Position numbers and translations under genes: made by a program. A stretch of DNA of 64,000 nt, taken from assembly GCF_964204645.1 (NCBI RefSeq), contig NC_134035.1, positions 11,812,451 to 11,876,450 of the forward strand, read 5' to 3'. Positions 3,929 to 35,618 of the stretch are shown piece after piece. The notes below the pieces were generated by a model. It did not search any database, was not told the origin of the DNA, and saw only the letters and a program-made list of their open reading frames with translations. The number at the start of each line of letters is the position of its first letter. The first letter of the stretch is position 1. Origin of the DNA: Tubulanus polymorphus. Lineage: Eukaryota > Animalia > Nemertea.

Positions 3929-6205
3929 ATGGACGAAGAAGATAAGAAAAAATTATACAACACGAGGAAAGGACATCGGAGTCACCTAACGAAATTATTT
4001 ACGAGAGGAAGAGACGCGGTATCTCAGGAGCAAAGCGTGCAAGGTATGTCCGTCGTATCGATGATAAAGGAAAAAATTCAAATGATGACCGATTTAGATT
4101 CAAACTTATTAGAATTTTATTCGAAAGAAAAAGAAATTTGCGACTTTATCGCCGAGTCTGAAGATTATTTGTCGGAACGAAAAATTGATTTGTCAGTGTT
4201 GGAGCATTCCGTACAAGCTCTTACGATTAATGTTCCTTCAAACCGTGATTTTACAACTCGTCCGAAAAGATTAACGCTCGAAAAATTAAAATTGCCGACA
4301 TTCTCAGGAAACCTCCTAGAATGGAAGTCATTCTGGGACTTATTTTGCGCAACAGTTGACGAGCAGTCGGATCTCTCGGGTATCGAAAAATTTAGTCATT
4401 TGATTACTCATTTGACAGGAGAAGCCAAAGAATGTCTTGAGGGCCTCCCGTTAACCGATGTGAATTATTTCGTTGCAAAAAAGTTATTGTGCGACCGATT
4501 CGGGCAAGCTCATAAAATCGCTGAGGTCTATATGACATCCTTGTTGAGTTTACCGGCACCCCGCTATGATCTAAAATCGTTAAGGTCATTTTACGATAAG
4601 TTAGAGAAATACATCAGGAGTTTAGATTCGATAGGGAAGCCTACTTCAAATTATGGCGCCATGTTAGTTCCGGTTCTGCGAACGAAATTACCATATGAAG
4701 TAAATTTGAGTATTTCTAAAGAGCATGGCAATAAAGACTGGGACCTCGACTCGTTGCGTACGGCTATAAAGAATGAAGTGTTAACTCTCGAGGCGTGTAA
4801 CACTTTGAGTTGTTCGAATTCAACTCAAGCCAAAAGTTCAACCGTGACGTCGTTGATTTCGACCGTAGATCGCGTGAATTATAATAGACCGGTTAAACAA
4901 CAACTACACCGTCCCAACAATTCGAACCGCGGTAAATGCGCGTATTGTTATTCTTCAAATCATTACGCGAACCAGTGCGAGATCATAACTGACCCTGAAA
5001 TTCGCTTCAGTATGATCAGAAATGCGAATTTATGTTATAGTTGTTTAGGGAAACACCGTTCTCGAGATTGTGGTTCTCAACAGCGGTGTAAATCGTGCGG
5101 CGGCAAGCATCATTCGAGTTTGTGCAGTGCTTCTTTTTTCAGGCGATCTCAACCTAAGGGTGTGCGTGCACATTTGGTCAGTTGTGAGCGTAGCGTTGAT
5201 GGTACTGCGCCTACACCTCAGTTAGTACCCGCGGCTCGCAATCCCACACCACAACAGCAGTCAACAATGAGTTTAATAAATGAATCCAATTCTTACGCAA
5301 AGTCAGAAACGTCTATAGAAAATGTTAACATTTCAGTAGCCGTTAATACGGTTCAAACGATTCCAGTTCATTTAAAAACTGCTGTTGGTAGGGTAACGGG
5401 ACCCGAGGAACATACCTTCGCCAACATCCTTTTCGATGATGGATCGCAAAGATCATTTGTTACGGAAGAGTTAGCAAATCTTCTAAAATTACAGATTATC
5501 AAAAATGCAGATTTGAATTTGTGTACTTTTGGGGTAACTTCGACTACGAACAGGAAGGTCGATATTGTAGAGATTAACATAATATGTACAGATGGATCTA
5601 CTTTAAAAGTCGAAGCAATAGTTGTACCGGCCATAACAAAACCATTACTTGTGCCTTCTGATATTGAAACAATTAATGAATTTAAAGGTCTTCAATTTGC
5701 ACAACCCATACATTACGCTTCAGATCACATCGACATTTCTGTATTAATCGGAAGTGATTATTACTACAATTTTATTGAGACTGAAGGCACAATACGGTCG
5801 AGCGATGGTCCAGTAGCGGTTCCAACTAAACTCGGTTATGTTATAACTGGGCCGAGGAAAAATGGTAGTTCTAGTAATGTTAGCATGTTACATGTAGTAT
5901 CGGAGCCTGATTCTTATAATCTTGGCCGATTCTGGTCGTTAGATATTTTAGGTATCACGCCTCCAGTCGACGAAACTTCCAATTTTTTAGAGGAATATCT
6001 AAATAGTTCTATTTCTAAAGAAGGAGGTATCTATCAGGCAAAACTCCCGTGGAGAGTGGGTTATGGTCCTTTACCATCAAATTACTCGGTAGCATACGGC
6101 CGTACAAGATCACTCGCTCGGCGCCTGTTTCAATCTTCGTTGTTAGAGAGTTATGACTCGAGTTGGAAGACATCTTACCGTGTGAAGAATAAAACCGTCA
6201 AATAA
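3929..6205 (+). CDS. BEL/Pao Gag (DUF1759-like), three zinc knuckles and aspartic protease (DUF1758-like) polyprotein fragment
   Basis: KLKLPTFSGNLLEWKSFWDLF; CAYCYSSNHYANQC, CYSCLGKHRSRDC, CKSCGGKHHSSLC; ILFDDGSQRSF; ISVLIGSDYY; TKLGYVITG; YQAKLPWR. Confidence 0.9.
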   Translation: MDEEDKKKLYNTRKGHRSHLTKLFTRGRDAVSQEQSVQGMSVVSMIKEKIQMMTDLDSNLLEFYSKEKEICDFIAESEDYLSERKIDLSVLEHSVQALTINVPSNRDFTTRPKRLTLEKLKLPTFSGNLLEWKSFWDLFCATVDEQSDLSGIEKFSHLITHLTGEAKECLEGLPLTDVNYFVAKKLLCDRFGQAHKIAEVYMTSLLSLPAPRYDLKSLRSFYDKLEKYIRSLDSIGKPTSNYGAMLVPVLRTKLPYEVNLSISKEHGNKDWDLDSLRTAIKNEVLTLEACNTLSCSNSTQAKSSTVTSLISTVDRVNYNRPVKQQLHRPNNSNRGKCAYCYSSNHYANQCEIITDPEIRFSMIRNANLCYSCLGKHRSRDCGSQQRCKSCGGKHHSSLCSASFFRRSQPKGVRAHLVSCERSVDGTAPTPQLVPAARNPTPQQQSTMSLINESNSYAKSETSIENVNISVAVNTVQTIPVHLKTAVGRVTGPEEHTFANILFDDGSQRSFVTEELANLLKLQIIKNADLNLCTFGVTSTTNRKVDIVEINIICTDGSTLKVEAIVVPAITKPLLVPSDIETINEFKGLQFAQPIHYASDHIDISVLIGSDYYYNFIETEGTIRSSDGPVAVPTKLGYVITGPRKNGSSSNVSMLHVVSEPDSYNLGRFWSLDILGITPPVDETSNFLEEYLNSSISKEGGIYQAKLPWRVGYGPLPSNYSVAYGRTRSLARRLFQSSLLESYDSSWKTSYRVKNKTVK

Positions 6206-6834: not shown

Positions 6835-7785
6835 ATGGCTTTAACTTCCATTCTTCATAACGGCACCAACCCAACTAATTTATACACAGCCGTTGTGCTT
6901 GCAGCAACTACGATTAACGAGACCTATCTCTGGTTTTACCTCGTATTCGCCAGTCTTTGTTATATCCTCGGATTCACCGGTAATCTTCTTATAGTAATAG
7001 TAATGCTGCAACGTAAACTATGGCGACGTTCTTTCAGTCGTATGTTCGTTCAACTAGCCGTCTGCGACACTTTGGTTCTTTTCTACGCTTATTTCTGTAA
7101 ATACATCAACGTCATATCTTATACATTTCACGGAAAGAAATTACTGGTTAAACCTTCAACACGAATTCAGTGTATATTTTTTGAGTTTTTCCTATCATGT
7201 GGCCTTTCGACCAGTCCGTGGACGCTGGTCCTTATAGCAACTGAGCGAATGTGTGTGGTTTGTTTCCCGTTTAGAGGTCCTCGTTTCTGGAGCCCTAAAA
7301 CTGCTTCTAAACTTTGCATTTCCGTAGTGTGTTTCGTATCGCTGGGCTATAGCTTTATACTTCTAGCTATCGATGTTAGTGACAACGGTTGTATCGTTAC
7401 GAATGTACCCACATTCACCAAGCCTTTGCTAACGTCAATTCTTATCTCTATCGGCCCGTTTTTTTCGTTAGCCATCATGTCGTCAATCACTTCTATCACT
7501 TTATTCAGAAGAAAAGGCAACTCAGAAACAACCCGAGCATCGAAATACTCAAATCAGGTAACCATGTTAGTTCTGTTACTATGCATCTTCTTCATGGTTA
7601 CAACATTCCCGACATCTTTATTTAGCCCTTTTATCTGGACAAATTCAGAATTAAAAAACATCTTCGCCGTTTTCAACGATATTATGATGGTAAATTATTC
7701 GTCTAATCTCTACTTGTATCTGATGACGGGAAAAGAAATCAGAATCGAATTGCGGAATTTAATCTTCGAAAGGAAATCGTCTTGA
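6835..7785 (+). CDS. Intronless class A (rhodopsin-like) GPCR, invertebrate peptide-receptor/chemoreceptor-like, copy 1 (316 aa)
   Basis: Seven hydrophobic segments; GN in TM1, LAVCD in TM2, ERM at the DRY position, FP in TM6, NYSSNLYLY in TM7; N-glycosylation sequons in the short N-terminus. Confidence 0.92.
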   Translation: MALTSILHNGTNPTNLYTAVVLAATTINETYLWFYLVFASLCYILGFTGNLLIVIVMLQRKLWRRSFSRMFVQLAVCDTLVLFYAYFCKYINVISYTFHGKKLLVKPSTRIQCIFFEFFLSCGLSTSPWTLVLIATERMCVVCFPFRGPRFWSPKTASKLCISVVCFVSLGYSFILLAIDVSDNGCIVTNVPTFTKPLLTSILISIGPFFSLAIMSSITSITLFRRKGNSETTRASKYSNQVTMLVLLLCIFFMVTTFPTSLFSPFIWTNSELKNIFAVFNDIMMVNYSSNLYLYLMTGKEIRIELRNLIFERKSS

Positions 7786-8307
7786 CCAGCCACAAAATGT
7801 TGCCGTCCTTCGAATTTGACAATCGACTTATAAATCCAATTAGCAAACATGAAACCAGTCCAACTTTTAACCGTGCGGGGCATTAATTCCTAGATGTGCT
7901 GACGACAACGAAAAAGATTCCACTCGTCCATCGCTCTTAAACTTACTGTTAAACTTCTAGTTCTAATCAATGATAATTTATAGTATCGAAAGAGTGATTA
8001 ATAATCAGAAAATACCGGCATTCAGAAACGATCCGCATCGGAATTCCAGTCGACAGACTATTTGGGTGCAGCTGTATTAACGTAATATTATGAAAGGAAG
8101 ATCACATTCGTTCAATTTGCAAAAAAAAAGTTTTTTCGTAATATTGAAATTTTATACCTTGTTTATTACAAGCTCTCTACCAACACGATGCGTGTATCGT
8201 ATTTTACCTCGATTCCTTTCCATTGACAATTCGTTAATGTCGTCTGGGGATGAAACTACGATTGCAAATGAACCCTTTGATTATCCTTCAAAAACAGCGA
8301 TTCGTTT

Positions 8308-8440
8308 AATCGGTCAATCTGATTACCTCGCAACTACTGACCCTACTTTCAATCGGTCAATCTGATTACCATTACCATACTGACCCAATTTTCAACTGGT
8401 CAATCGGATTATCTTGCACATACTGACCCTATTTTCAACC
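8308..8440. repeat. Degenerate tandem repeat, about 42-bp unit, 3-4 copies
   Basis: Recurrent ttttcaa(t/c)cggtcaatctgattacc...tactgacc(c)t. Confidence 0.6.
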
Positions 8441-9791
8441 GTTTAAGTTTATTGAAATTAGGAGATATTAACAAACTGCAACTAGCTTCCTTAATTTACA
8501 ACTTCGTATGATCAAAACTTCCCACAGCCTTCTCCGATTACTGGAATTTCGGTCATCACATACACATTATCGAAACACCCGGACAATGGATAACTTACGA
8601 TAATACCACATTGCAAAACTAACTTTAGACGATACACACTCTAAATATTTCTGGACCTTTTCTGTGGCATTCCAAAATCGATTCGTAAATTCCCCAGTCT
8701 ACAAGGTATTTGAAAGAAAATATTTAAAATTCATCTAAGCTTCGTGATTATGTATAACCCACTTATACATTGATTTGTGATGTATCATTAATTCTATCTC
8801 TTTAGATTATTATTATGAACTTCCTTGTTGTATTTCAATGTTTGAATGAATGCCTTTAACTGCATATAATCTGAAAAAGTGCATCCTTATTACCCAGCGT
8901 TCCATATATGACCTCAATTAATTGTCAGAAAACTTGCAAGCTACATTCTGGCCATGGGTCATGCGCTTGACCTTTTGGGTCAAAGAGGTAATCTCAGTTT
9001 CATGGTGCGTCACCTAGTTATTTTTCTATCTAGAAAAGTATATTTCACATATCTTATTTGCAAATATTCTCTATTCCTATGTTATCCATTATAAAAGCGA
9101 TTATAAATGTATGTCCACTTTGATACTGTTTTCCCTGTGTTTTGATGTTAACATTTTATTGCATATCATTTCCTATGTAACTTGTATATTATATGGAGCA
9201 ATAAAATTAAAGTTCAAGTTATCTACCAACAAGGGTCATAGAACATAGGGCTTTTAGGCAGCACTGATACTCTTCAACACAGGTAATAACCCTTCAGCCC
9301 CACTATCAAAAGTTCTTGAATCTATGACCTGCTGATTGAGTCCATAATTGACTACATGGGTTCTTTAGGGTACTAATAATAATAGTGATAATAATAACAA
9401 GAGTATTCCATAATTATGGGATATACACTTTCGTTCCTAGATACCCCAACTATTTACTATGTTTTACTAAGTGGCTCGTCATTTCGTAGTATGCTCCAGC
9501 TAAGTGGTGATCTCGTAAAGGGTCCTCCGTACAACTGTATCTAATATTTTGCACTTCGCAGAATGAAGAACTAACGATACTTTGTAAATGATATTTTTTT
9601 CGAATTCTGAAAGCCGTTGTTTCACTATAGAGACTACTGCGGTGAAGACCTAAGTCCGAAACTGAAGGTCATTTGAATTGACGAACAGACGAAGAAGGCG
9701 TATACATTAACGTACATCATAAAGCCGCCGAGAATATAGTTACAATGATTAGTGATATGTAATTGAGAGTATAGTCTGATTGGTTGAGGAA

Positions 9792-10742
9792 ATGGCTTCA
9801 ACTTCCATTCCTCAGAACCGCACGAACCCTACTAATATATACACAGCCGTTGTACTGGCTGCAACTACGATTAACGAGACCTATCTCTGGTTTTACCTCG
9901 TATTCGCCAGTCTTTGTTATATCCTCGGATTCACCGGTAATCTTCTTATAGTAATAGTAATGCTGCAACGTAAATTATGGCGACGTTCTTTCAGTCGTAT
10001 GTTCGTTCAACTAGCCGTCTGCGACACTTTGGTTCTCTTCTGCGCTTATTTCAGTAAATACGTCAACGTTATATCTTATACATTTCACGGTAAGAAATTA
10101 CTGGTTAAACCTTCAACACGAATTCAATGTATATGTTTTGAGTTTTTTCTATCACTTGGCCTTTCGACTAGTCCGTGGACGTTGGTCATCATAGCTACCG
10201 AGCGAATGTGCGTGGTTTGTTTCCCGTTCAGAGGTCCTCGTTTCTGGAACCCTAATACTGCTTCAAAATTATGCATTTCCGTAGTGTGTTTCGTATCGCT
10301 GGGCTATAGCTATTTGTTTTTAGCTATCGATGTTAGTGACAACGGTTGTATCGTTACGAATGTACCCACATTCACCAAGCCTTTGCTAACGTCTATTCTT
10401 ATCTCTATCGGCCCGTTTTTTTCGTTAGCCATCATGTCGTCAATCACTTCTATCACTTTATACAGAAGAAAAGGCAACTCAGAAACAACCCGAGCATCGA
10501 AATACTCAAACCAGGTAACCATGTTAGTTCTGTTACTATGCATCTTCTTCATGGTTACAACATTCCCGACATTTATATTTAGCCCTTTTGTCTGGACAAA
10601 TTCAGAATTAAAAAACATCTTCGCCGTTTTCACCGATATTTTAATGATTAACTATTCGTCTAATCTCTACTTGTATCTGATGACAGGTAAAGAAATCAGA
10701 ATCGAATTGCGGAATTTGATCTTCGAAAAGAAACCGCCATGA
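9792..10742 (+). CDS. Intronless class A GPCR, copy 2 (316 aa), tandem paralog of 6835-7785
   Basis: True ATG at 9792 (MASTSIPQNRT), same length as copy 1, 26 amino-acid differences by hand count. Flanks also homologous. Confidence 0.92.
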   Translation: MASTSIPQNRTNPTNIYTAVVLAATTINETYLWFYLVFASLCYILGFTGNLLIVIVMLQRKLWRRSFSRMFVQLAVCDTLVLFCAYFSKYVNVISYTFHGKKLLVKPSTRIQCICFEFFLSLGLSTSPWTLVIIATERMCVVCFPFRGPRFWNPNTASKLCISVVCFVSLGYSYLFLAIDVSDNGCIVTNVPTFTKPLLTSILISIGPFFSLAIMSSITSITLYRRKGNSETTRASKYSNQVTMLVLLLCIFFMVTTFPTFIFSPFVWTNSELKNIFAVFTDILMINYSSNLYLYLMTGKEIRIELRNLIFEKKPP

Positions 10743-20276: not shown

Positions 20277-21299
20277 TTACTGCGGTTTAGGCGGTATACC
20301 GTCTGATTGATTGTAGCCAGGCGGATAGTCGGGGTTATAAGCGGGAGGAGCCGCCGATAGTTCGGGGTACACGCCACCAGGAGGAGCCGCTTGTGGAGGA
20401 TATTGGCCTGGGTAGGGATCGCCACCGTACGTGCCTGGTGGTGGTCCGTAACCAGCAGGTGGAGGCCCGGAATACTGCGCCGGGTAAGCCATATTTTGTT
20501 GTTGCGGGGGATATTGGACCCCGGGTTGGTGCTGCGGGGGATACTGAACCCCGGGTTGTTGCTGCGGGGGATAATGTATCCCAGGTTGTTGCTGTTGCGG
20601 GGGATACTGATACTGATACTGTATCGGGGCAGCTCCGACAGGCTGTTGTATAATGCGAACGGGCTGCGCGGTGTAAATGACACCCGTTTGCGGGGCTGAT
20701 TGTCTCGTACAGCAGACCGCGCGGCAGCTGATAGCCGATTGAATGATCGGTACTACAAACATCAAAATACTGACGATCAGATTGATAGCGTGCATCGCCA
20801 TACGCGCGCGGATCTGTGAGTCGCTCGACGGTTTCTGCCAAAATGTGTAGCACGACAGGTAACCGTGTCTGAGGTGGCCGTCCCAGTTTTCCATGCAGTA
20901 CTTCGCGCGTGAGTCGATGCCGAGACCGACGCACGCGAATATGAACACCATGAAACCGGCGATCGACGCGAATATCGACATCACCAGCGTACCAACGATC
21001 GGACATGAGCGTTTCGACTTGGCCGCCTGCACGCCGAGACCGCCGGCGATGAAGAAAATCACCGACACCCAGAAGCCGAAACCGATCATGTACAACGCGG
21101 CACGCGTCGGGATCATGACGATACCGGTGATCAGTATGACGAAACCGCAGACGATCTGTAAAATACCGCATCGACGCGACGAATCGTGCGCGAAGCCGCG
21201 TCGTTGTCCATCAGGTGGCGCTGCTGCTGTCATCGGTTGAACGGTCGGTTGAACGGTTGGAACGTAAATGGGACCTTGCTGCGTATTGACTTGGGCCAT
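20277..21299 (-). CDS. MS4A/CD20-like four-TM protein 1 (340 aa) with Cys-containing second loop and long Q/P/Y-rich C-tail
   Basis: Single-exon ORF; four TM segments; CD20-like motifs GILQIVCG, GFWVSVIFFIAGGLG, LVMSIFAS; juxtamembrane CRAVCC; YPPQQQPG repeats, YPEL and PPAY. Confidence 0.82.
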   Translation of the reverse strand: MAQVNTQQGPIYVPTVQPTVQPMTAAAPPDGQRRGFAHDSSRRCGILQIVCGFVILITGIVMIPTRAALYMIGFGFWVSVIFFIAGGLGVQAAKSKRSCPIVGTLVMSIFASIAGFMVFIFACVGLGIDSRAKYCMENWDGHLRHGYLSCYTFWQKPSSDSQIRARMAMHAINLIVSILMFVVPIIQSAISCRAVCCTRQSAPQTGVIYTAQPVRIIQQPVGAAPIQYQYQYPPQQQQPGIHYPPQQQPGVQYPPQHQPGVQYPPQQQNMAYPAQYSGPPPAGYGPPPGTYGGDPYPGQYPPQAAPPGGVYPELSAAPPAYNPDYPPGYNQSDGIPPKPQ

Positions 21300-21728
21300 C
21301 GTAAACTCGTGTCTAGACGTCGAGCATTAACAAACGACGCCGAACGACGACTTAAAAACGAACGCTTTTTTTTTACGGTAATTTCTTTTCTGAAATAAGC
21401 AAGAAATCGAAAGAAAACATTTAAAAAACGAAATACATTTTGGACGCAGAAAAAAAATCCAATTTCGATTTTCATCGTTTCAATTTTTTTTAAACCTGAA
21501 AATAAAAATACGGTGTCATCGTTAATGTTTTTTTTTTCGGTATTTTTTTTTTCGTTTATCTGGAAGAAACTAAAGATTAATAGATATCCGTATGAAAGAT
21601 TGCCTGAAATGAGATTCGTTTGTCGCCGAAATATCATCGAAAAATAATTTCAATTCAATCAGAGGGAAGGAATGTACGTTTTGGAGCAGAAAAATGCAAC
21701 ATAATCAAAATATTATCGATAACGAATT

Positions 21729-22643
21729 CTACTGCGGCATGTTAGGATAGAGGAGCTCGCGACCGGCGATCAACGGCTGGTCGTCTTCGGCCGCGAAATC
21801 CCTCGCCTGCGCTTGCGGCGCTTTTTTAATCGGATTAGGTCTCGGGATGACGGGCGAGCCGGCGATCGGGCGCGACCTCGCGATCTGCGGGCTGTACGCG
21901 CCGCGCGTCACCTGAGGGGAACCGTTCGAGACCCCGCGTGTCGTCTTAGCGACGCGCGGACTCGGCAACGACGTTAAAACATTCGTCAGTTTGCCGTCGA
22001 TGTAGCAATGGTCACCTTGGGAAACGGGTTTTATCCGATTGTTGTAGTTTTCGACTTTGAGGGCAAGCGATTCGTCTTTCGTCGCCACCGTATAGACGAC
22101 GCGGTCCTGCGGCTGTTGGTGTATCCGACAGCAGACTGTACGACTGCTGACGACGACCTGGATAACGGACACGACGAACACGACGGAAGCTACGAGAACA
22201 TTGATCAAATGCATGGCGATACCGGCGTCGGATTGCGCGTACAAGCTGGCGGCGCCGCCGACGAGGAAGGGTAGGAACACCAACACGACGATGAAACACG
22301 ACACGACAGACAACACCAAACAGCCGATAATGCCGCACGTTCGCTTCTGGTGCGACGCGTGCACGCCGGCGCCTCCGGCGCCGATGAAGACCAACGCGGC
22401 GATCAGACCGACCGACGGCAACGCCGTCCACGTCGTCGCCATGATCACGATCGTCGTGATGATCACCGCGGCGCCGCTGATGATCTGCACGACGCCGCAG
22501 CGCCGCGCCGACACGTGCGAGTAACCGTAACGTTGACGACGGTGTTGTTGGTGTTGGTGCTGTTGTTTTTTCCACGGTAACGGTTGAACGGTCGGTGCAT
22601 AAACTGGTGCCGTGTGCAAAACGACGATGTCGGCGTCCGTCAT
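21729..22643 (-). CDS. MS4A/CD20-like four-TM protein 2 (304 aa)
   Basis: Paralog of 20277-21299: RRCGVVQIISG, FIGAGGAGV, GCLVLSVVS, AMHLINV, SRTVCC; shared N-terminal PVYAPTVQP. Confidence 0.8.
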   Translation of the reverse strand: MTDADIVVLHTAPVYAPTVQPLPWKKQQHQHQQHRRQRYGYSHVSARRCGVVQIISGAAVIITTIVIMATTWTALPSVGLIAALVFIGAGGAGVHASHQKRTCGIIGCLVLSVVSCFIVVLVFLPFLVGGAASLYAQSDAGIAMHLINVLVASVVFVVSVIQVVVSSRTVCCRIHQQPQDRVVYTVATKDESLALKVENYNNRIKPVSQGDHCYIDGKLTNVLTSLPSPRVAKTTRGVSNGSPQVTRGAYSPQIARSRPIAGSPVIPRPNPIKKAPQAQARDFAAEDDQPLIAGRELLYPNMPQ

Positions 22644-22981
22644 GATTTGCGTTTCAGCGCGAACAATCGCGCGATCGACTACATAGATTTTGTGTGCTGT
22701 TTAATGATTGGTGGTTTTGGTGGCGTCTGAAAAATTGGAAACAAACAATTTATACAATGAATAATGTTACGTATAGTAACAGTAAACTCAGCTGCAGTCC
22801 GATAACCTTTATTCTCGGAATGGTTGATCATATGCACACAAATGAGGGAAACAGGGAATAAAACATGTTTGATTTCGGAAAACATGTTTCTCGTTTCTCG
22901 TAAACGCGCATGATACAGGGAAACACTTGGAAACATGTTTCCATCTCCTGTTTCTCTTCATCGTGTGCATTGGGCCTAATG

Positions 22982-23159
22982 TACAGTCAAACCTGCTCAA
23001 TTTGCATCAGTTCAATCCGGAAATTCATCTCATCCCGATATTGTTTACGGTTCATTTATACGTAATTACATGAAAAAATGAAGTTGGATTGAGATTTCTT
23101 AAATACCTCATAGATTAAATGAATCTCAACTGATCTGGATTAAACGGGTTCGACTTTAT
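22982..23159. mobile_element. Tc1/mariner-pogo-type MITE (TA|CAGTCAAACC ... GGTTCGACTT|TA)
   Basis: Imperfect TIRs starting CAGT flanked by TA. Confidence 0.5.
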
Positions 23160-23927
23160 AATCCAATTCGGATATCACTCCTCACGCTCAAAAATATCAG
23201 ACTCCAGCCGAGTCTACTGTACTTAGGCCTTCATTATGTTTCAGCATAGAACATTCGCCAATAGTAACATGTAACTAGTGAGCACTGAAAGGGTTCTAAC
23301 CGAGTTCGTAAAACTGATATCCTGCGGAGAAATGTTTCGTATGAGTTCTCGCTCGAGTCAACGAATCCAAAATAGTTGAACCTAATTTCACGGCAAGCAA
23401 AAAATTATACACAAAGAGATAGATTAAAAAGAAACAAGAAAAATTGAATACGGATTCGACGCTTTCAAAAAAAGATTTACGTAAAATTTTGTTAAGTGTA
23501 GAATATTCTAAAATGTGAAGCATGTGGCAATAGATGGGAAACATCTGCTATAGTTTCAATGGTCTAAAAACGGGAGCCGTTGAAATACGTTATTCCAACT
23601 AGCGTTGTGCTGCGGTGCGCCGTGTGCATATCCAGCCTCCAGCCTCTTATTCCGACTAACGCATCATCTTCATGTAAGCAGATTCCACATTTTTCACTAT
23701 TCTTAGGGTGAAATTCGATCTCGAGGTGACACCCGGATGTCCAGATAACGCTCATAGTTGAAGACGACTATATCCGATATAGATCAGAAATAGTATCATG
23801 TGGTAATCTGGACTAGCCTCAAATTCATGTAGCACACCTAAGTTCACTTCGATGGTATTTTGTTGTTTTTCAAGTCATCACAGCAACCGATTATGAAGTT
23901 GGGGGGGATTCGCATCAGTTGTCGCAT

Positions 23928-24752
23928 TCAAGTGGTGATTGCGAGTGAATACGGAGGTGGAGGTGTATCCGGTGGTATATATTCATTCGTATCCGGCTGC
24001 TGTAAAATGGTGTTATCATCGACAGCTGTATCGCCGTTACTATCATCAACAGACGCGATCCGTAACGACTCCGAACACGACGACGGCTGACGGAGATTTT
24101 CTCGTCGCTGCGGGGATTCCGGGACGTTTCTCACGTTATCCCCGACGTCTCGTACATTAGTGTCCGGTTTGGGGAAACACTTCGCGGTGGTCGCGACGAC
24201 GACGTACGCGGGAGGCCGATCGACGACGTCCGCCAATTCGAACTCGGACGACGCGACGACCGAAACGTCCGTCCGTCGACAAAACAGAGTTTGCGCGCAC
24301 AACGAAGCCAACGCCAACGAAACTAAACACGGAATAAGAACCAACGCGGACACGACGCTTCTCAACGCGACGTCGCCGGCGGCGAATACGTACGAATGAG
24401 CGTAGAATATGACGAAGTGCAAACCGGCGAAAAACGATACGATCGCCGCGATCAGAGTTCCGTTGATCATACACGTCAGTTTGGTGCGTGTGGTTTGAAC
24501 GGCGAACCCGCCCGTCGCGATGAACAACGCGCCCGATACGTAGCTGAATCCGTTTACGAACTCGACGCCGATCACGAGACCGACGATCAGTAGCGTAGAC
24601 GTCGATATCGCGCCGCAAAATATCAGCAGAATTCCGGCGCGCCACACGTACGCGTCCGGGAAACCGGGTCGTCTGTCGCCGCGAGGCGGGCCTTCTCGCA
24701 GCGGCCCAGCGTACAACGGCGCCGAAACTCGTCTCGCCGGAAGAGCTTCCAT
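23928..24752 (-). CDS. MS4A/CD20-like four-TM protein 3 (274 aa), more diverged
   Basis: Four TM segments; AGILLIFCG, GALFIATGGFAV, TCMINGTLIAAIVS, CAQTLFC; C-tail PPAY and PPPPY. Confidence 0.75.
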   Translation of the reverse strand: MEALPARRVSAPLYAGPLREGPPRGDRRPGFPDAYVWRAGILLIFCGAISTSTLLIVGLVIGVEFVNGFSYVSGALFIATGGFAVQTTRTKLTCMINGTLIAAIVSFFAGLHFVIFYAHSYVFAAGDVALRSVVSALVLIPCLVSLALASLCAQTLFCRRTDVSVVASSEFELADVVDRPPAYVVVATTAKCFPKPDTNVRDVGDNVRNVPESPQRRENLRQPSSCSESLRIASVDDSNGDTAVDDNTILQQPDTNEYIPPDTPPPPYSLAITT

Positions 24753-26487: not shown

Positions 26488-29400
26488 ATGGCGGCGCCCA
26501 TGAAAATTTTAAATCTCGCTAATTTTGCCCGAAAATGCTCTCTAAAGTGGCGATACGTTCAAAGAATCGGCTCCAATTGCAATCGTATGCGTAGAGTAGT
26601 TACGGCGGCTCCTTTCGGAGTTTTGATCGCCGCCACACCGGTCGTGGCTAAGTCAGAAAAAGATGACGAAATGGTGAGTAGATTTTTCCCCTGACCCATA
26701 TGCCATGGCAATGCCAATGGCATCGTATGATAAAGATATTTTGAATTGAATTGAATAGCCTAATAGAGGCCTAATTAAATCGGCGATCAAGGCTAACTAA
26801 ACGGTCCAGATTCAAGAATCTAAATTATCGTAGTTGTTACTGTAGCGATCTTTCAAGCTAGATACTAGATAATGATATAGTGGTCTTGTGGATTGTGAAA
26901 ATATCCGATCGTGAAACTAAACCACAGACAAGTTACTGACTAGGCCCAACCATAACCTGAAACAACACTAGCGCCTCCTCTGGATCCGCCCCTGTCAAGG
27001 TAGATTTGAAAATGAACATTCAGTTCATTTCTGACATTCCAGCTGATCGATTATTAACACTGTACAAGATAGATATATTCTGACATGGATCTGTCTTATT
27101 ATCTTATTAAGGCAGATGATTTTTTACGAAATTTTTGCCCACTTTTATTCTATTTTCAGCAATTAGCGCTCAGTAACAAGAGACTGATACAAAACGCTGC
27201 ATTAGCGACAGTTGATGCGTCTTCTGCGATGTTAAACCAAGCTGTGATGGCGTTGATTTTAGTGGAAGATGAATACACTAAAGTAAGAATGTACATACAT
27301 TGTTTAACCACGGCAGGTTTAATAGTTGAATGTACATTGTTTAACCACGGCAGGTTTAATAGTTGAATGTACATTGTTTAACCACAGCAGGTTTAATAGT
27401 TGAATGTACATTGTTTAACCACAGCAGGTTTAATACTTGAATGTACATTGTTTAACCACGGCAGGTTTAATATTTGAATGTACATTGTTTAACCACGGCA
27501 GATTTAATAGTTGAATGTACATTGTTTAACCACGGCAGGTTTAATACTTGAATGTACATTGTTTAACCACGGCAGGTTTAATAGTTGAATGTACATTGTT
27601 TAACCACGGCAGGTTTAATACTTGAATGTACATTGTTTAACCACGGCAGGTTTAATAGTTGAATGTACATTGTTTAACCACGGCAGGTTTAATAGTTGAA
27701 TGTACATTGTTTAACCACGGCAGGTTTAATAGTTGAATGTACATTGTTTAACCACGGCAGGTTTAATAGTTGAATGTACATTGTTTAATAGTTGAATGTA
27801 CATTGTTTAACCACGGCAGGTTTAATGGTTGAATGTACATTTTTTAACCACGGCAGGTTTAATAGTTGAATGTACATTGTTTAACCACGGCAGGTTTAAT
27901 ATTTGAATGTACAATTTTTAACCACGGCAGGTTTAATAGTTGAATATGTACATTGTTTAACCACGGCAGGTTTAATATTTGAATGTACATTTTTTAACCA
28001 CGGCAGGTTAAATAGTTGAATGTACGTTGTTTAACCACGGCAGGTTTAATAGTTGAATGTACATTGTTTAACCATGGCAGGTTTAACAGTTGAATGTACA
28101 TTGTTTAACCACGGCAGGTTTAATAGTTGAATGTACGTTGTTTAACCACGGCAGGTTTAATAGTTGAATGTACATTGTTTAACCACGGCAGGTAGCTAAA
28201 GAGCTCACCGCGACAATCGATTACAGTTTACAAAACTTGGACAATGAATTCGCTCGAATGAAGGCGTGGAATAAAATCAATGATTTTCGAGACACGTTGT
28301 CCGATCTAAAAATCAAACGCGAGGTAGGGGTTGTTTTCTGTTTTTCGTGTTCTCGGTTTTCGTGTCGGGCTTGTTAGTAGAGTCGTCAGTGATTTTGATT
28401 GCCCTAAATGAGTAAAATTTTGATTGGCATTAGATTTGAAATGTTTCGATTCGGCGCATGGATCCTAAACCGGAGGGATCTGTAAAATCCTGCTCGAATC
28501 TTGAAGATGTAGAAATTAGCTTTTTGTGCCACAATGATTTTAACCGAAAGATATAAAACATCAAAAGAATTATTAAACATTGTTGGTTTTCAACTTCAAA
28601 TTTCTTATTTTAAAATCAAACCCCATTTCGTTTCTGGTAAGTGTGGTGGATTTACAAGTTACACCGAACCACATCTGCAAATCAGATAAATAAAACGGGG
28701 ACAATCCCCATTTCAAGGTCTAAAATCTTTCAGGTTTGTTTTGTTGTGCGTGAGACGCTTATCAGCGAAAAGTTAATCTAATCTGGATATATGCTTGAAT
28801 GTATGCAGGTTTTTATTGCACAGCGAACTCAGCTTAATCTGGATCATTCGGGACTGATGAACCCAATCCGGTTTATAAATGAAAAATCCAGATTTGTCCG
28901 GAACAAATCGGGTTTACTGCGAATATTTTAGATCGGGGATCAAAATTACTAAGTGACGGATGGGCTGTAAAAAACCCACTACAAAATAAATATAAACAAC
29001 TGTTATTGTTGTTTCCTTGCGTTTCAGGTGGAATCATTCCACCCATCTTCAGAGTTTATTAGAAATGTAAGGAAAAAACAAAAGCTGTTGCTTAGATTTT
29101 GTATTGTGTGTTTTCCCGCACGGAGAGACTATCCATCACTGTAATTACTAATAACTACTATAAGCGACTCTGTGTAATTTACTGATAATTGAATATACAA
29201 AGACCGCCGCCGCGACACGGAATTCGAGGGCATTTTCGAGTTGTTGTTTCAGCTTTCTTTTTTTTTGTTTTTTACCGTTCGTTGTTAGGCGTTAACGAAA
29301 CTTGTAGCGCTCTTAGAGAAACGCATACAGTGCCTCGGCAACGAGTTCGCGCAGCAGGAAATTTGGGATGAAATTATCGAGGCCCGTAGCGCGGTTAACG

Positions 29401-32096
29401 AGGGTAAAACGAAGAAATCGGTATGTACTAATTATATGCGTGGTGAATTCCGGTTGACAGAGTGAGGTCTCAGGTGGAGCGTTCAAAAAGTATGTACCCC
29501 ATAATTTTCCGACTTCCCCTCCACCTCTACTTACTTTGTGCATTAAGTTTCCTTACTTCCCTCTGAGATACGCACATACCATGTCATTAATCCCCTTCCT
29601 GTCAGTATTCAATCTTGACAATCACTAACCTGTTTTGATTTTTTTAAAATCAAGGACAAAATTTTCTTTCCAAAAGTACTTTCATTAGGCTACACTGCAT
29701 TAACACAAGAAGTGGTGATTTGTATTTGAGTATTTGGTGCATTGAGTAGAATCCAGATTGATTCAATCGGTACCCCATGATGATTATGTATTTTTTCTGC
29801 TTCAAACCCCCAAACCTCCCACTCCTGTGTACCTTGTTTGGTTCTGAAAATTCAAACCCTCGCCCCCATAGTGGTACATACTTGACGAACGCTCCTTTAT
29901 TTTAAGTAGCTGATTCGGGCCGTTCGTAGAATATCCTGCAACTTTAAGAATTAGTGCAACAGAATAAAACAGATTTACCTAGAATTTGTTCGCTTACTTT
30001 AATTCCGTTGTGGTCAAACAAGAGTTTCTTGATTTGGTACCAACACACTTTCATTTTAGCGCACTCGTCAAAAGTGGATTTTCATTTCCAAACTTAATTT
30101 TGGCACGCTCAAACAAAGGACCATCTATTTTGGCACCTGTACTTAAAACCCGTTTTCATCTTAACATCTGCGGCAAAAAGGAATTTTCATTACCGTGAGA
30201 GCACCAAAATTGATGAGGATTTTTTGTGCGGCAAATCACATTTTTGGTAGCCAAAATGAATGTCTGTTTTGATGGTTGTCGAAAATGGATATTCTTTGTC
30301 TTATGAAACAGATTCTTCTTAAAAGAAAGTTCCAGGCATTTTGTGTGGCTTACAATTGCATGTGGGATATTTTCTATTTTGAGGCGTGAATCAGCGACCA
30401 TCGTCAATAAAAACCACTACTTCTACATCAAACCACGTTTCAACTCATCTCTTCTGTATTGTGTTGATGCACTGTGTTCATATATTTTTAGATATTTTGT
30501 GAATAAATTCAATTTTTCCACGATCTCTCTTAATCATACACATACCAAACTGCTGTATACTACTTTATTGTACATTTTGACATGTTTTCATTCCTGTTGT
30601 ATGCGACGAGGTCAGCTGTACTGCGAAGTATTCTTTAGGAGTTACTACATTTTAGTTAGTCGCGCTACACCCCTCCCCCCTTCATTTGAAACCTCATTCA
30701 ACAACAGATTTACTATGACAGTAACACTAAACAAGTCTAATAAAGCGTAAAATGGATTCCTAGTCTTATTTTTGGTGAGCTTAAAAAACTGGCCGCCTAT
30801 TTACCCTGTACATTAATTACTTTAGAATCATGATCAAGCTAACACAGTAACAGACAGGGGCGGATCCAAATGCCAATTTTGAAGGATTAACACCAAAAAA
30901 ATGGGCCCTTTGATGTCCAAAAGGGCAATTTGGTGTACTGCCACCACTGAAATGATGCACCAATTATCTTTTTTGACAAAATGAAAAAAGGCACTCAAAA
31001 ACATTTGAAGACATTTGTACAAGTCCCACTGGATCCGCCCCTGTCGGACAGAAAGAACTGATTACAAATTGATAAGGAAATAAATATCATTGAATAAGAA
31101 GAGATTTTTTGTAAAACAATCTCATTGAATTCATTGATCACAGTTTTATCATTGGCCGTATCAAAATCATGGTTACTTGAACTTGTTGAATGAGGTTTCG
31201 ATGTATTTATTCAAGCACCTTCTTCGCTTTGCTTTTGTGGGTTATTCATTCAGCTTTGTTTATGTGCTTTTGTATAATATATCTATCTACGTAAACTTCC
31301 ATTTATTATTGAATTAATGAAATACTCAGTAGTTACATCTACGAGCAATCATCTGAATGGTGAGCTGAGATGATTTCCGTACACTATACTATGGGCAGGA
31401 TAGGCGAATTAAGAAGTGTTTTCAAAAACCGATGATTATTCTTTCAGCATTATGAACAGATAGTTGAACACGCCGAAAAACTGCTCAATACGGCTGCAGA
31501 GGCTGCTTTTGTATCAGGTTTGTAGTATTACTTGTCGTTATTGATACCTGTCGTCGACCATTTTCCTTTTGAAAATGATACCTTATTGACCTGGCCTTAT
31601 CGACAGGGGCGGACCTAGGGTTAAGACCTGAGGATTACCGATTTTTTTAGGGCAATATGAGTTTGAAAAAAGGACCTGTAGCAACTGAGTTGTGAGTTAA
31701 AGTCAAACTCTGAAATAAAATTCGTTCATTTTCAACGAGTTAACTATATCGAGTGAAATTTTAATTAGGAACTGGTTCCAGGCACTTTGATATTGACAGG
31801 AAGAATACACGCTGTTCAAGAATTCTCCACACAATTCTGCCTTCGTTTGAAGGGTGCCCTTTTCACATGTTCTTTTCGACGAAATTGTCTAAATATTGCC
31901 TGAATATTTTTGTTCGTACGTAGGTTCCGAATACGCTAGCACGGTGGCCGGCGAGCACCTGTACAGCGCGCAAGTAAAAAAGGAAATTCAACGCCGCGAA
32001 ACGGAACGCGCCGAACGCGAACTGCAAGCGATGGAAGTAAAAAGTATCAAAATGACGAGTAAACACGCGGAGAAACAGACGAAACAGCGAGGATGA
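26488..32096 (+). CDS. DIABLO: Smac/DIABLO homolog (mitochondrial IAP antagonist), about 227 aa with one exon 3
   Basis: Exons 26488-26673, 27160-27282, 28192-28323 (3a) or 29289-29420 (3b), 31448-31517, 31924-32096. Arg/Lys-rich presequence, then GVLIA|ATPV (IAP-binding-motif-like, cf. human GVTLC|AVPI); ALILVEDEYTK, IWDEIIEAR, AAEAAFVSG match Smac as recalled. Confidence 0.88.
27283..28191 (+). repeat. 37-bp minisatellite (about 24 units) forming the whole intron between DIABLO exon 2 and exon 3a
   Basis: Unit gtttaatagttgaatgtacattgtttaaccacggcag. The array starts at the GTAAGA donor and its last CAG is the exon-3a acceptor. Confidence 0.97.
28192..28323 (+). CDS. DIABLO: DIABLO alternative exon 3a (132 nt, phase 0/0)
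   Basis: VAKELTATIDYSLQNLDNEFARMKAWNKINDFRDTLSDLKIKRE; cag|...gag|gtaggg. Confidence 0.7.
29289..29420 (+). CDS. DIABLO: DIABLO alternative exon 3b (132 nt, phase 0/0)
   Basis: ALTKLVALLEKRIQCLGNEFAQQEIWDEIIEARSAVNEGKTKKS; long pyrimidine tract, then ttgttag|, and donor tcg|gtatgt. Confidence 0.82.
30853..31045. mobile_element. MITE with TIR GACAGGGGCGGATCCA / TGGATCCGCCCCTGTC
   Basis: Matching TIR pair; related half-ends near 12235, 26981 and 31603. Confidence 0.75.
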
Positions 32097-32403
32097 GAAC
32101 GAGCGATTTTAGTTTAATTAGCTCGAATAATGTATATACGATGATGTAGTCAATTTTGTACACTTTCCAATGATTCGATGTATATCGATTATTAGTCGCG
32201 ATTTTATGTGATTTGAAGTCGTTTTCCACGGCGCGATACGCGTAACGGCAGAAAACGACGTTATAATCTTCGACATTTCTTTATTACAGTAGACTCCATT
32301 TGATCTTGGAGTAATCATTTGACCTCCAAGGTTTAACCCTGGGATTCTACTGCCTCGTACTAACGCGTGCTCCAGGTGATGTGTGGATAAAAGTTCATCG
32401 GGG

Positions 32404-32576
32404 TACAGTAGAACTCGCTGTAATTCAGATGACTACGGAAAAATGCCCAGATTTCTCCGAATTAAGCATAATCTGAATAATAGTTTACACGGTTCCAGAT
32501 AAAATGGACCAAATATTTCATCCGAATTAAGTGAAAAAGCAGATTGAGAAATCCGAATGAAGCCGGTTCTACTGTA
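32404..32576. mobile_element. Tc1/mariner-pogo-type MITE (TA|CAGTAGAAC ... GTTCTACTG|TA)
   Basis: TIRs and flanking TA visible. Confidence 0.7.
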
Positions 32577-32633
32577 ATTGTCGGACCTGCTCTGACTGTC
32601 CCGGAATTGACTTGGTCCCGCGAGATATGAGCC

Positions 32634-32788
32634 TACAGCGCCGATCTACTTTATTGCCCTTCTTATAAAAACCGATTAAAGTAAGTTTCGATGTTTGCTC
32701 GGGATCACATGATTACCTGTTAATAAAGCCATCCTCTTTCAGGGATGAGAACCGGGGTTACATGTATCTAAAGCGGGGATCTACTGTA
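32634..32788. mobile_element. Degenerate Tc1/pogo-type MITE
   Basis: tacagcgccgatctacttta ... taaagcggggatctactgta, imperfect inverted ends with TA flanks. Confidence 0.45.
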
Positions 32789-32930
32789 CACATCTTTCTG
32801 GTCAAGTTGAATAGTGTCTGTAGCGGTAGCTATTAATGTTATGTATTTCTTATCAACACGACAAAATGACCTCGTTAATCTAGTGTCCTAGAAATGCATT
32901 TACGTTTAGTTTAGATAGTAGATATTACTG

Positions 32931-33178
32931 TACACGAAAACCTCGTCTAACCTCGGCCGAACTGGGACCGGGTAGGGATAGAAAAACACGCCAGGGTCCA
33001 GTTCCACAGTTCCGAGTTAAGATTTGACTCTGAACTAACTCATTGAAAATGAACTAACTCTAACTCAGAGTTAACTCTAACTCACAACTGTGGAACTGGA
33101 CCCTGGATGTCAGTAAATCATCTCATTTTCAAGAACTCCCGAGTTTTCCATATTGGGAGTAAGGCGAGGTTTACTGTA
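32931..33178. mobile_element. Tc1/pogo-type MITE carrying a nested second MITE
   Basis: tacacgaaaacctcg ... cgaggtttactgta ends enclosing 32991-33106. Confidence 0.55.
32991..33106. mobile_element. MITE with 21-bp perfect TIR CCAGGGTCCAGTTCCACAGTT (possibly PIF/Harbinger-derived)
   Basis: Perfect TIR. Inverted copy at 59031-59143; same TIR with another interior at 51825-52016; degenerate copy near 31672-31782. Superfamily is inference. Confidence 0.85.
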
Positions 33179-34646: not shown

Positions 34647-35618
34647 CTAACGCGACACGATAAATAGTTTATAGATTTCCTGGCGTACTTCGCCGCCTGA
34701 CAAGAGATAAAGGAAAAAGTTGATCGAATAATTGGTTACGTACATCAAAGATAATATTTCGTAAGCGGCCTGTACGCTATCGGTCATAGTACCGCGAGGA
34801 GCGATCACTTGGATGAGCCAGTGAGGCAGGGATAATCCCAAAAACGAAAACGTCAGAGTTAACATCATTACGGTTACGCGATTTACTTTCCGCTCGCCTT
34901 TTTCGTCGTGACTGCCGCCGCTGACCGATCGCGACTGTCTGACCAGAATTACCACGATTAACGCGTTCAAAATCATAATCGAACCGGCCGGTAAGTAGAC
35001 GACGGTGAAGCTGAAAAACTGAGCGGCTCGTTTCAATCGTTTGGCGTTGAAATAACAAGCGCCGTTATCGTGATACAACTGCCTGTTGTTCAGAGCGGCC
35101 AATAAACAAATCAGCACCAACGATACGGTGATGATTCCGGCGAATTTCAGCCGCAGAAATCGCCGCGCGAAAAACGGAAAAGCTACCGAAACGAACCGCT
35201 CCGAGGCGATGACCACCATGAACCAGGCGGACACGTGCTGGCTTACCGTCGGCAAAGAGTTCATTACGATACACTGGACGTCAGTGGTGATGACGATGAC
35301 CAATCGCCGTCCGAATTTCAACGAAAGAAAGTTCACCCAGTACAAGAAATGCGCGCACAAGACAACAGTGTCGGAAACAGCAATGGCGGTTAGATACAGC
35401 GCGTAGGTACGACGTCGAAGGACGGTGACGTTCATCACGACGACGATGAGAAAGTTACCCGAAAATCCGACGAAAATTATCACCGGTAAAACAGCCACCT
35501 CCATCCAGAATTTACTGGCGCCCATCTTAGCGAAATTTGTATATCTATTCATAACCTTGGATGGCCAATAGCCGGCGTATCTTTCGACAACGGTCACATT
35601 GTTCATCACCGAAATCAT
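34647..35618 (-). CDS. Intronless class A GPCR (323 aa), same broad subfamily as the tandem pair but distant
   Basis: GFSGN, IAVSD, QC before TM3, ERF at the DRY position, LP in TM6, NYSINFFLY in TM7. Confidence 0.92.
   Translation of the reverse strand: MISVMNNVTVVERYAGYWPSKVMNRYTNFAKMGASKFWMEVAVLPVIIFVGFSGNFLIVVVMNVTVLRRRTYALYLTAIAVSDTVVLCAHFLYWVNFLSLKFGRRLVIVITTDVQCIVMNSLPTVSQHVSAWFMVVIASERFVSVAFPFFARRFLRLKFAGIITVSLVLICLLAALNNRQLYHDNGACYFNAKRLKRAAQFFSFTVVYLPAGSIMILNALIVVILVRQSRSVSGGSHDEKGERKVNRVTVMMLTLTFSFLGLSLPHWLIQVIAPRGTMTDSVQAAYEILSLMYVTNYSINFFLYLLSGGEVRQEIYKLFIVSR

Follow-up and report, generated by a model that had tools for sequence, protein, structure and literature searches.

Does the Smac/DIABLO gene of the ribbon worm Tubulanus polymorphus offer its transcripts a choice between two versions of exon 3, and, if so, how old is the choice, how is it made, and what does it change in the protein? 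The gene lies on the plus strand of a 64,000-nucleotide window (contig NC_134035.1 of assembly GCF_964204645.1, positions 11,812,451 to 11,876,450), to which all positions given here refer. Between exons 2 and 4 are found exon 3a (28192–28323), the more diverged copy, and exon 3b (29289–29420), the family-like copy. Each has 132 nt and codes for 44 residues, and both are phase 0/0, open in frame, preceded by AG and followed by GT. Their translations align without gaps at 13 identities in 44 positions, with a BLOSUM62 score of 66 that none of 20,000 shuffles matched. An earlier note on this DNA had claimed these coordinates, lengths, phases, frames and splice signals together with the gapless alignment, and all of them hold on the sequence. 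The two exons are thus adjacent, homologous, of equal phase and of similar length, as is characteristic of tandem-duplicated exons. It is quite probable that Smac exon 3 was duplicated in tandem long ago and that both copies have been kept as a mutually exclusive pair. The one informative sequencing run shows either 3a or 3b joined to exon 4, in a ratio of roughly 1:1, giving two proteins of 227 residues.

The rest of the gene model is shared by both forms. Coding exon 1 (26488–26673) encodes a presequence-like N-terminus and the candidate motif ATPV (residues 49–52) for binding inhibitor of apoptosis proteins (IAPs). Exon 2 (27160–27282; 123 nt) encodes helix 1 and corresponds to residues 12–50 of human mature Smac (Pfam Smac_DIABLO E 0.0014, alignment to PDB 1FEW), exon 4 (31448–31517) has 70 nt and phase 0/1, and the coding part of exon 5 (31924–32096) provides helix 3 and the stop. 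The arrangements 1-2-3a-4-5 and 1-2-3b-4-5 are each open over 227 residues; joint inclusion of 3a and 3b (271 residues) and skipping of both (183 residues) would also be in frame. The two model proteins are identical in sequence to RefSeq XP_074660209.1 (isoform X2, the 3a form) and XP_074660208.1 (isoform X1, the 3b form), which are automatic annotations only. Both pass the curated cut-off of Pfam PF09057 (25 bits), with 62.2 bits for the 3a form and 89.7 bits for the 3b form, and match human Smac with E values of 1e-6 and 4e-11, respectively. By hand count, 3a has 7 and 3b has 12 identities in the same register to residues 51–96 of the human mature protein, and neither exon alone gave a Smac match in Pfam or PDB searches. 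Hence, the gene belongs to the Smac/DIABLO family by profile and, as described below, by fold, which bears out the earlier identification. Because the 3b form has the higher Pfam score and the stronger human match, 3b is taken as the family-like copy, nearer to vertebrate Smac as had been suggested, and 3a as the derived one.

Searching the genome with the Pfam Smac profile gave matches at this locus only, so that a single Smac/DIABLO gene is detected. The possibility that the pair reflects an assembly haplotig or a second gene was rejected, since both exons lie inside one gene and there is no further Smac match. When the 268-Mb genome was searched in six frames, 3a and 3b were each other's best non-self match (E 0.6–0.7 taken singly), and no third copy of exon 3 was found in the introns of the gene.

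Evidence that both exons are used comes from reads of four runs of one study, of a kind not on record, compared over 28160–33000; exon 2 and the intron that follows it lie outside this stretch. Run X3, taken as RNA because of its GT..AG joints, contains the joints 28323–31448 (3a to exon 4, depth 25.4), 29420–31448 (3b to exon 4, depth 27.6) and 31517–31924 (exon 4 to exon 5, depth 53.7). The depths of the first two sum to 53.0, against 53.7 for the third. Each version of exon 3 lies in a 190-nt contig of this run, made of 29 upstream letters, the 132 nt of the exon and 29 nt of exon 4. The upstream letters do not match the adjacent intron in either case, and we infer that the two contigs are the branches of a bubble with shared flanks. 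A joint of 3a to 3b (28323–29289) is not seen in the X3 contigs, which drop rare forms. Because contigs show presence rather than absence and depth is a rough measure, the safe statement is that one sample shows use of both exons to a similar extent and that double inclusion is not common; strict mutual exclusion is likely. Among the junctions listed for checking in the earlier note, those of 3a and 3b with exon 4 are therefore both present, and the absence of 3a joints that it associated with a dead exon is not what is found.

The divergence between the copies speaks to their age. Synonymous sites are saturated (proportion of differences pS 0.85), nonsynonymous sites differ at pN 0.46 (dN about 0.70), and 9 of the 13 residues common to the two exons are encoded by different codons. 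At the nucleotide level 61 of 132 positions are equal, with 21, 26, and 14 matches per 44 at the first, second, and third codon positions. In simulations of neutral decay, frame, length and both splice ends were retained in at most 0.12% of cases with indels and at most 3.3% without them. Saturation and simulation bear out the earlier proposal of an old duplication, which on this showing has probably been under selection. A contig of run X1 that differs from the assembly has 24 substitutions in 29448–30571 and none in 29176–29447, a stretch spanning exon 3b, its acceptor and the 3′ arm of an intron stem described below; around 3a the X1 contig has one difference in 717 nt and is uninformative. 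Searches for Smac in relatives say little on age, as their results reflect search reach: a protein search with exon 2 gave the T. polymorphus protein and one low-complexity false match, and word searches gave nothing for exon 2 and only the two T. polymorphus isoforms for the others, which again reflects reach, not absence. An Atlas search gave chordate-dominated Smac clusters, without sequences, and scans of viral, bacterial and metagenome data gave no matches, which is no surprise for a gene of an animal.

How might one exon exclude the other? Frameshift followed by nonsense-mediated decay was rejected as the excluding mechanism, as both exons have 132 nt, and so was U2/U12 incompatibility, all donors being U2-type. 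The earlier note held that, at about 965 nt apart, the exons could be joined without steric hindrance. The spacing does not rule out steric exclusion, however, because a predicted long-range stem in the intron between them would loop out about 880 nt, and folding predictions thus suggest that the claim needs correction. The 5′ arm (28349–28370) starts 25 nt past the 3a donor, and the 3′ arm (29209–29231), which is unique in the genome and unchanged in the divergent haplotype, ends 57 nt before exon 3b, leaving 25 + 57 nt (about 82 nt) of the 965-nt intron outside. The stem would have 21 pairs (four of them G-U), one mismatch and one bulge, with pair probabilities of 0.7–1.0, those of the 5′ arm included, in a 1,050-nt fold. 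Paired with each other, the first 60 nt and the last 110 nt of the intron reach −45.7 kcal/mol, compared with −28.7 ± 3.9 kcal/mol when shuffled (0/1000). The 3a donor region (28319–28324) is in turn predicted to pair with 28343–28348 in a local hairpin (28319–28348; pair probabilities 0.6–0.8), and the donor is mostly paired in the prediction with or without the far arm.

Double inclusion would then be blocked by RNA structure, the stem pinning the ends of the intron together. The effective distance from the 3a donor to the 3b branch point would come near the steric limit, for which PMC7969005 gives about 50 nt and PMC13762713 gives 60 nt, and the 3a donor would also be partly hidden in its hairpin. 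Candidate branch points past the stem are A29251, with a weak consensus and an effective distance of about 45 nt, and A29274, with a good consensus, 15 nt from exon 3b and at an effective distance of about 68 nt; two further adenines with a good consensus, A29151 and A29185, are within the loop. In Drosophila Dscam 17.1/17.2, structure plus branch-point position has been implicated (PMC7969005), and this pair is cited as a case of steric hindrance with RNA structure (PMC7969005, PMC13762713). The worm gene resembles the case so cited in being a two-exon choice for which structure of the intervening intron is proposed to act together with the donor-to-branch-point distance; it differs in that the worm stem is a predicted one and the branch points are candidates. 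We give structure-assisted steric exclusion by the predicted stem about an even chance.

Exclusion might instead be set by splicing factors or other pairings, with the stem a chance product or a mere splicing aid, a serious contender that falls somewhat short of even odds. Pairing comes easily to GU-rich arms, the gene has several further duplexes of −32 to −39 kcal/mol, and exon 3 of Drosophila Rdl is a published factor-driven case without structure (PMC13762713). Yet the stem sits exactly at both intron ends, its pairs form with a probability close to 1 when 1 kb is folded, and it is no repeat; nothing of comparable strength is seen in the four remaining introns of the gene. The arms of the stem were also considered as terminal repeats of a transposon, which was rejected as they are unique and include four G-U pairs. 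No known RNA family was matched in Rfam. In the arrangement of Dscam exon 6 and 14-3-3zeta, selectors beside each exon compete for one docking site; an all-against-all duplex scan of the worm gene gave no obvious docker served by two selectors, and a weaker alternative pairing of the 5′ arm is with 29380–29419.

The loop of the stem contains a dispersed hairpin-shaped repeat with inverted arms (28968–29115), similar to miniature inverted-repeat transposable elements (MITEs), which is matched at 50 or more other places in the genome; as far as shown, it has no part in the mechanism. It is one of the inverted-repeat pairs of the introns, the others being 29476–29895, 30688–31199 and 30853–31045, and at least one of them is dispersed and MITE-like. 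Use of a CAG that lies 36 nt before the 3b acceptor would extend the exon in frame (29253–29288), but the extension ends in a TAG stop, so that the products would be removed by decay.

Turning to the protein, the mature 3a form was modeled with a pLDDT (predicted local distance difference test) of 88.8 as an elongated bundle of three helices (9–69, 74–121, 125–178). Its top 11 Foldseek matches in PDB are all Smac (template modeling score, TM, 0.84 to 8e2i), the model having been made from a single sequence and Smac lying inside the predictor's training range. The next-best match is the helical bundle dimer of MIC60 (mitofilin; PDB 9qwr, TM 0.74–0.89, 10% identity), likewise a protein of the intermembrane space; this may be mere helical-bundle similarity. 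The swapped 44 residues are mature positions 56–99, equivalent to human mature 51–96, and would run from the last part of helix 1 through the turn to the middle of helix 2, i.e., the helix 1–helix 2 hairpin. By hand count, 3a, 3b and human agree at six positions (L, L, N, W, I, R), and the hydrophobic pattern of the two exons agrees at 35 of 44 positions. Local charge over exon positions 1–18 is −2 in 3a and +2 in 3b, and over positions 19–33 it is +2 in 3a and −4 in 3b; the mature forms are equal in net charge and isoelectric point, with the distribution of charge reversed.

The N-terminus, with the candidate motif, is untouched by the swap. ATPV is in register with human AVPI and, as K55 aligns to K7 of human mature Smac, A49 corresponds to human A1; the motif fits the published IAP-binding motif (PMC7810383). 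The alignment suggests cleavage of the presequence before A49, which would expose ATPV. The forms would thus share the presequence, the candidate motif, the dimer-forming start of helix 1 and helix 3, and A/A, A/B, and B/B dimers should be possible. Because the hydrophobic pattern is kept and charge is redistributed, the swap would probably affect stability or a secondary partner surface of electrostatic nature, and would probably leave peptide binding by BIR (baculoviral IAP repeat) domains as it is. Contacts of human Smac with BIRC6 involve the N-terminus, an acidic surface facing arginine loops, and a helical contact (bioRxiv 10.1101/2022.08.30.505823, 10.1101/2022.08.30.505748, 10.1101/2022.08.19.504532). 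Hypothetically, the swap may alter a surface facing BIRC6 or XIAP.

Both isoforms could be used and still be nearly equivalent in function, selection on 3a having been relaxed and the exon having drifted at a surface remote from the functional end, and the duplicate being retained because each copy must fold. The 3a form scores 27.5 bits lower on the family profile and its segment has fewer identities to the human one, which fits such drift, as do the equal net charge and isoelectric point and the common IAP-binding motif. A redundant copy with a weak acceptor should, however, vanish long before synonymous sites saturate, and neither the near-equal use in run X3 nor the reciprocal charge pattern is what one would expect; we consider near-equivalence unlikely.

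The weak acceptor of 3a has an unusual setting. The whole of the intron upstream (27283–28191) is a tandem array of a 37-nt unit, repeated about 24 times and confined to this place in the genome. Every unit closes with a copy of the 3a acceptor, and the acceptor itself, which is without a polypyrimidine tract, is the last unit of this minisatellite. Each of the upstream AGs in the array would give a stop or a frameshift; the last AG alone opens the exon, and it is the one used in run X3. The array is probably a local and recent expansion. Masking of the decoy acceptors by hairpins was considered, but the folding energies of decoys and of the true site are both close to −6 kcal/mol and thus uninformative. 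As the units begin with GT and exon 3a begins with GTAG, AG|GT junctions could, speculatively, allow recursive splicing. An acceptor inside an unstable tandem array raises the possibility that the 1:1 ratio is allele-specific, one haplotype splicing 3a and the other 3b, e.g., through minisatellite length, and the depths of 25.4 and 27.6 are indeed close to 1:1. Against this, both exons are present in the divergent haplotype of run X1, where neither they nor the two stem arms are altered, and the long joint survival of the exons needs selection on both; such allelic splicing is quite improbable. That 3a is a dead or noisy exon, as its lack of a polypyrimidine tract and of a Pfam Smac match of its own might suggest, is the least credible possibility and already largely refuted by its joining to exon 4 at 3b-like depth, by the neutral-decay simulation and by the Smac fold.

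Several points weigh against an old, structure-enforced and functionally distinct pair. The transcript evidence comes from a single informative run of one study of unrecorded kind, and the RefSeq models give no independent support because they were probably built on the same reads. With exon 2 outside the compared stretch, the 2–3a and 2–3b joints come from the models, and low-level double inclusion or skipping may be compatible with the data, as contigs lose rare forms. Exon 3a is judged in one species; the stem is likewise a prediction in one species, and the branch points are candidates. Only 2 of 573 same-geometry window pairs across the 64 kb are as stable as the stem, but the windows were chosen after the stem had been seen, which lowers its real significance, by our estimate to perhaps between 1 in 50 and 1 in 100. 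The sole good branch-point consensus downstream of the stem, A29274, gives a distance above the steric limit. On the protein side, the 3b form gave a model too poor (pLDDT 58.5) for a comparison of the two folds, and a contact of the swapped segment with BIRC6 or XIAP is hypothetical.

With these points in mind, tandem duplication with retention of a mutually exclusive pair is still the favored interpretation, and one can ask how far it extends. It would be most consequential if the pair were conserved across ribbon worms or spiralians and if the stem enforced a regulated switch between Smac forms that have opposite charge on the helix 1–helix 2 hairpin and differ in their grip on BIRC6 or other IAPs, setting the apoptotic threshold by tissue or stage; this extension we regard as doubtful, with the chances well against it. 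The usual view of Smac is of a scaffold that presents a four-residue motif, but the BIRC6 structures show its helical body to bind as well. Natural forms with the same motif and a charge-reversed hairpin are hence a ready pair for probing the contribution of the Smac body, and a conserved, regulated switch would amount to a natural experiment on the role of the scaffold beyond presenting the motif. The predicted stem would offer a small and testable example, from beyond the arthropods and vertebrates, of exon exclusion assisted by RNA structure. Weighing against its importance are the well-known type of splicing, the presence of both isoforms in RefSeq, and the fact that the pair is known from one species.

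Comparable exon pairs are known in other genes. PMC9741552 describes 236 human events of tandem-duplicated mutually exclusive exons, including PKM and OGDH 4a/4b; the worm pair resembles these in consisting of homologous, adjacent, equal-phase exons, one per mRNA, that swap a surface segment of one fold. DIABLO was not found in the accessible part of that list, nor in the supplements of PMC5740500. Human Smac/DIABLO is also alternatively spliced (PMC5085631, PMC11887678). In the human exon-2 event the exon is skipped, which affects the targeting sequence; it is not a swap of homologous exons as in the worm. Human Smac3 results from an exon deletion and is no such swap either. Literature searches gave no paper on the worm exon pair or on XP_074660208.1 and XP_074660209.1. 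The earlier statement that no duplicated-exon switch was known to be described in Smac thus stands for the literature searched, whereas the forms as such had already been annotated, automatically, in RefSeq as X1 and X2.

Some other features of the gene and the window may be mentioned. In the 3′ untranslated region, run X3 shows a GT..AG skip of 123 nt (32376–32499, approximate to ±5 nt) at depth 49.7, alongside an unspliced contig (57.4). The stretch sits within a dispersed repeat and may represent an intron far past the stop, a haplotype deletion or another copy of the repeat. Elsewhere, positions 3929–6205 hold a 758-residue open reading frame (ORF) with DUF1759 and DUF1758, typical of the gag-protease region of BEL/Pao-type retrotransposons. 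Two near-identical single-exon ORFs resembling G-protein-coupled receptors lie in tandem at 6835–10742, with a third at 34647–35618. On the minus strand, 20277–24752 contains three tandem single-exon ORFs for membrane proteins, the first of which has a CD20-like (MS4A) Pfam match and a tail rich in Pro, Gln, and Tyr.

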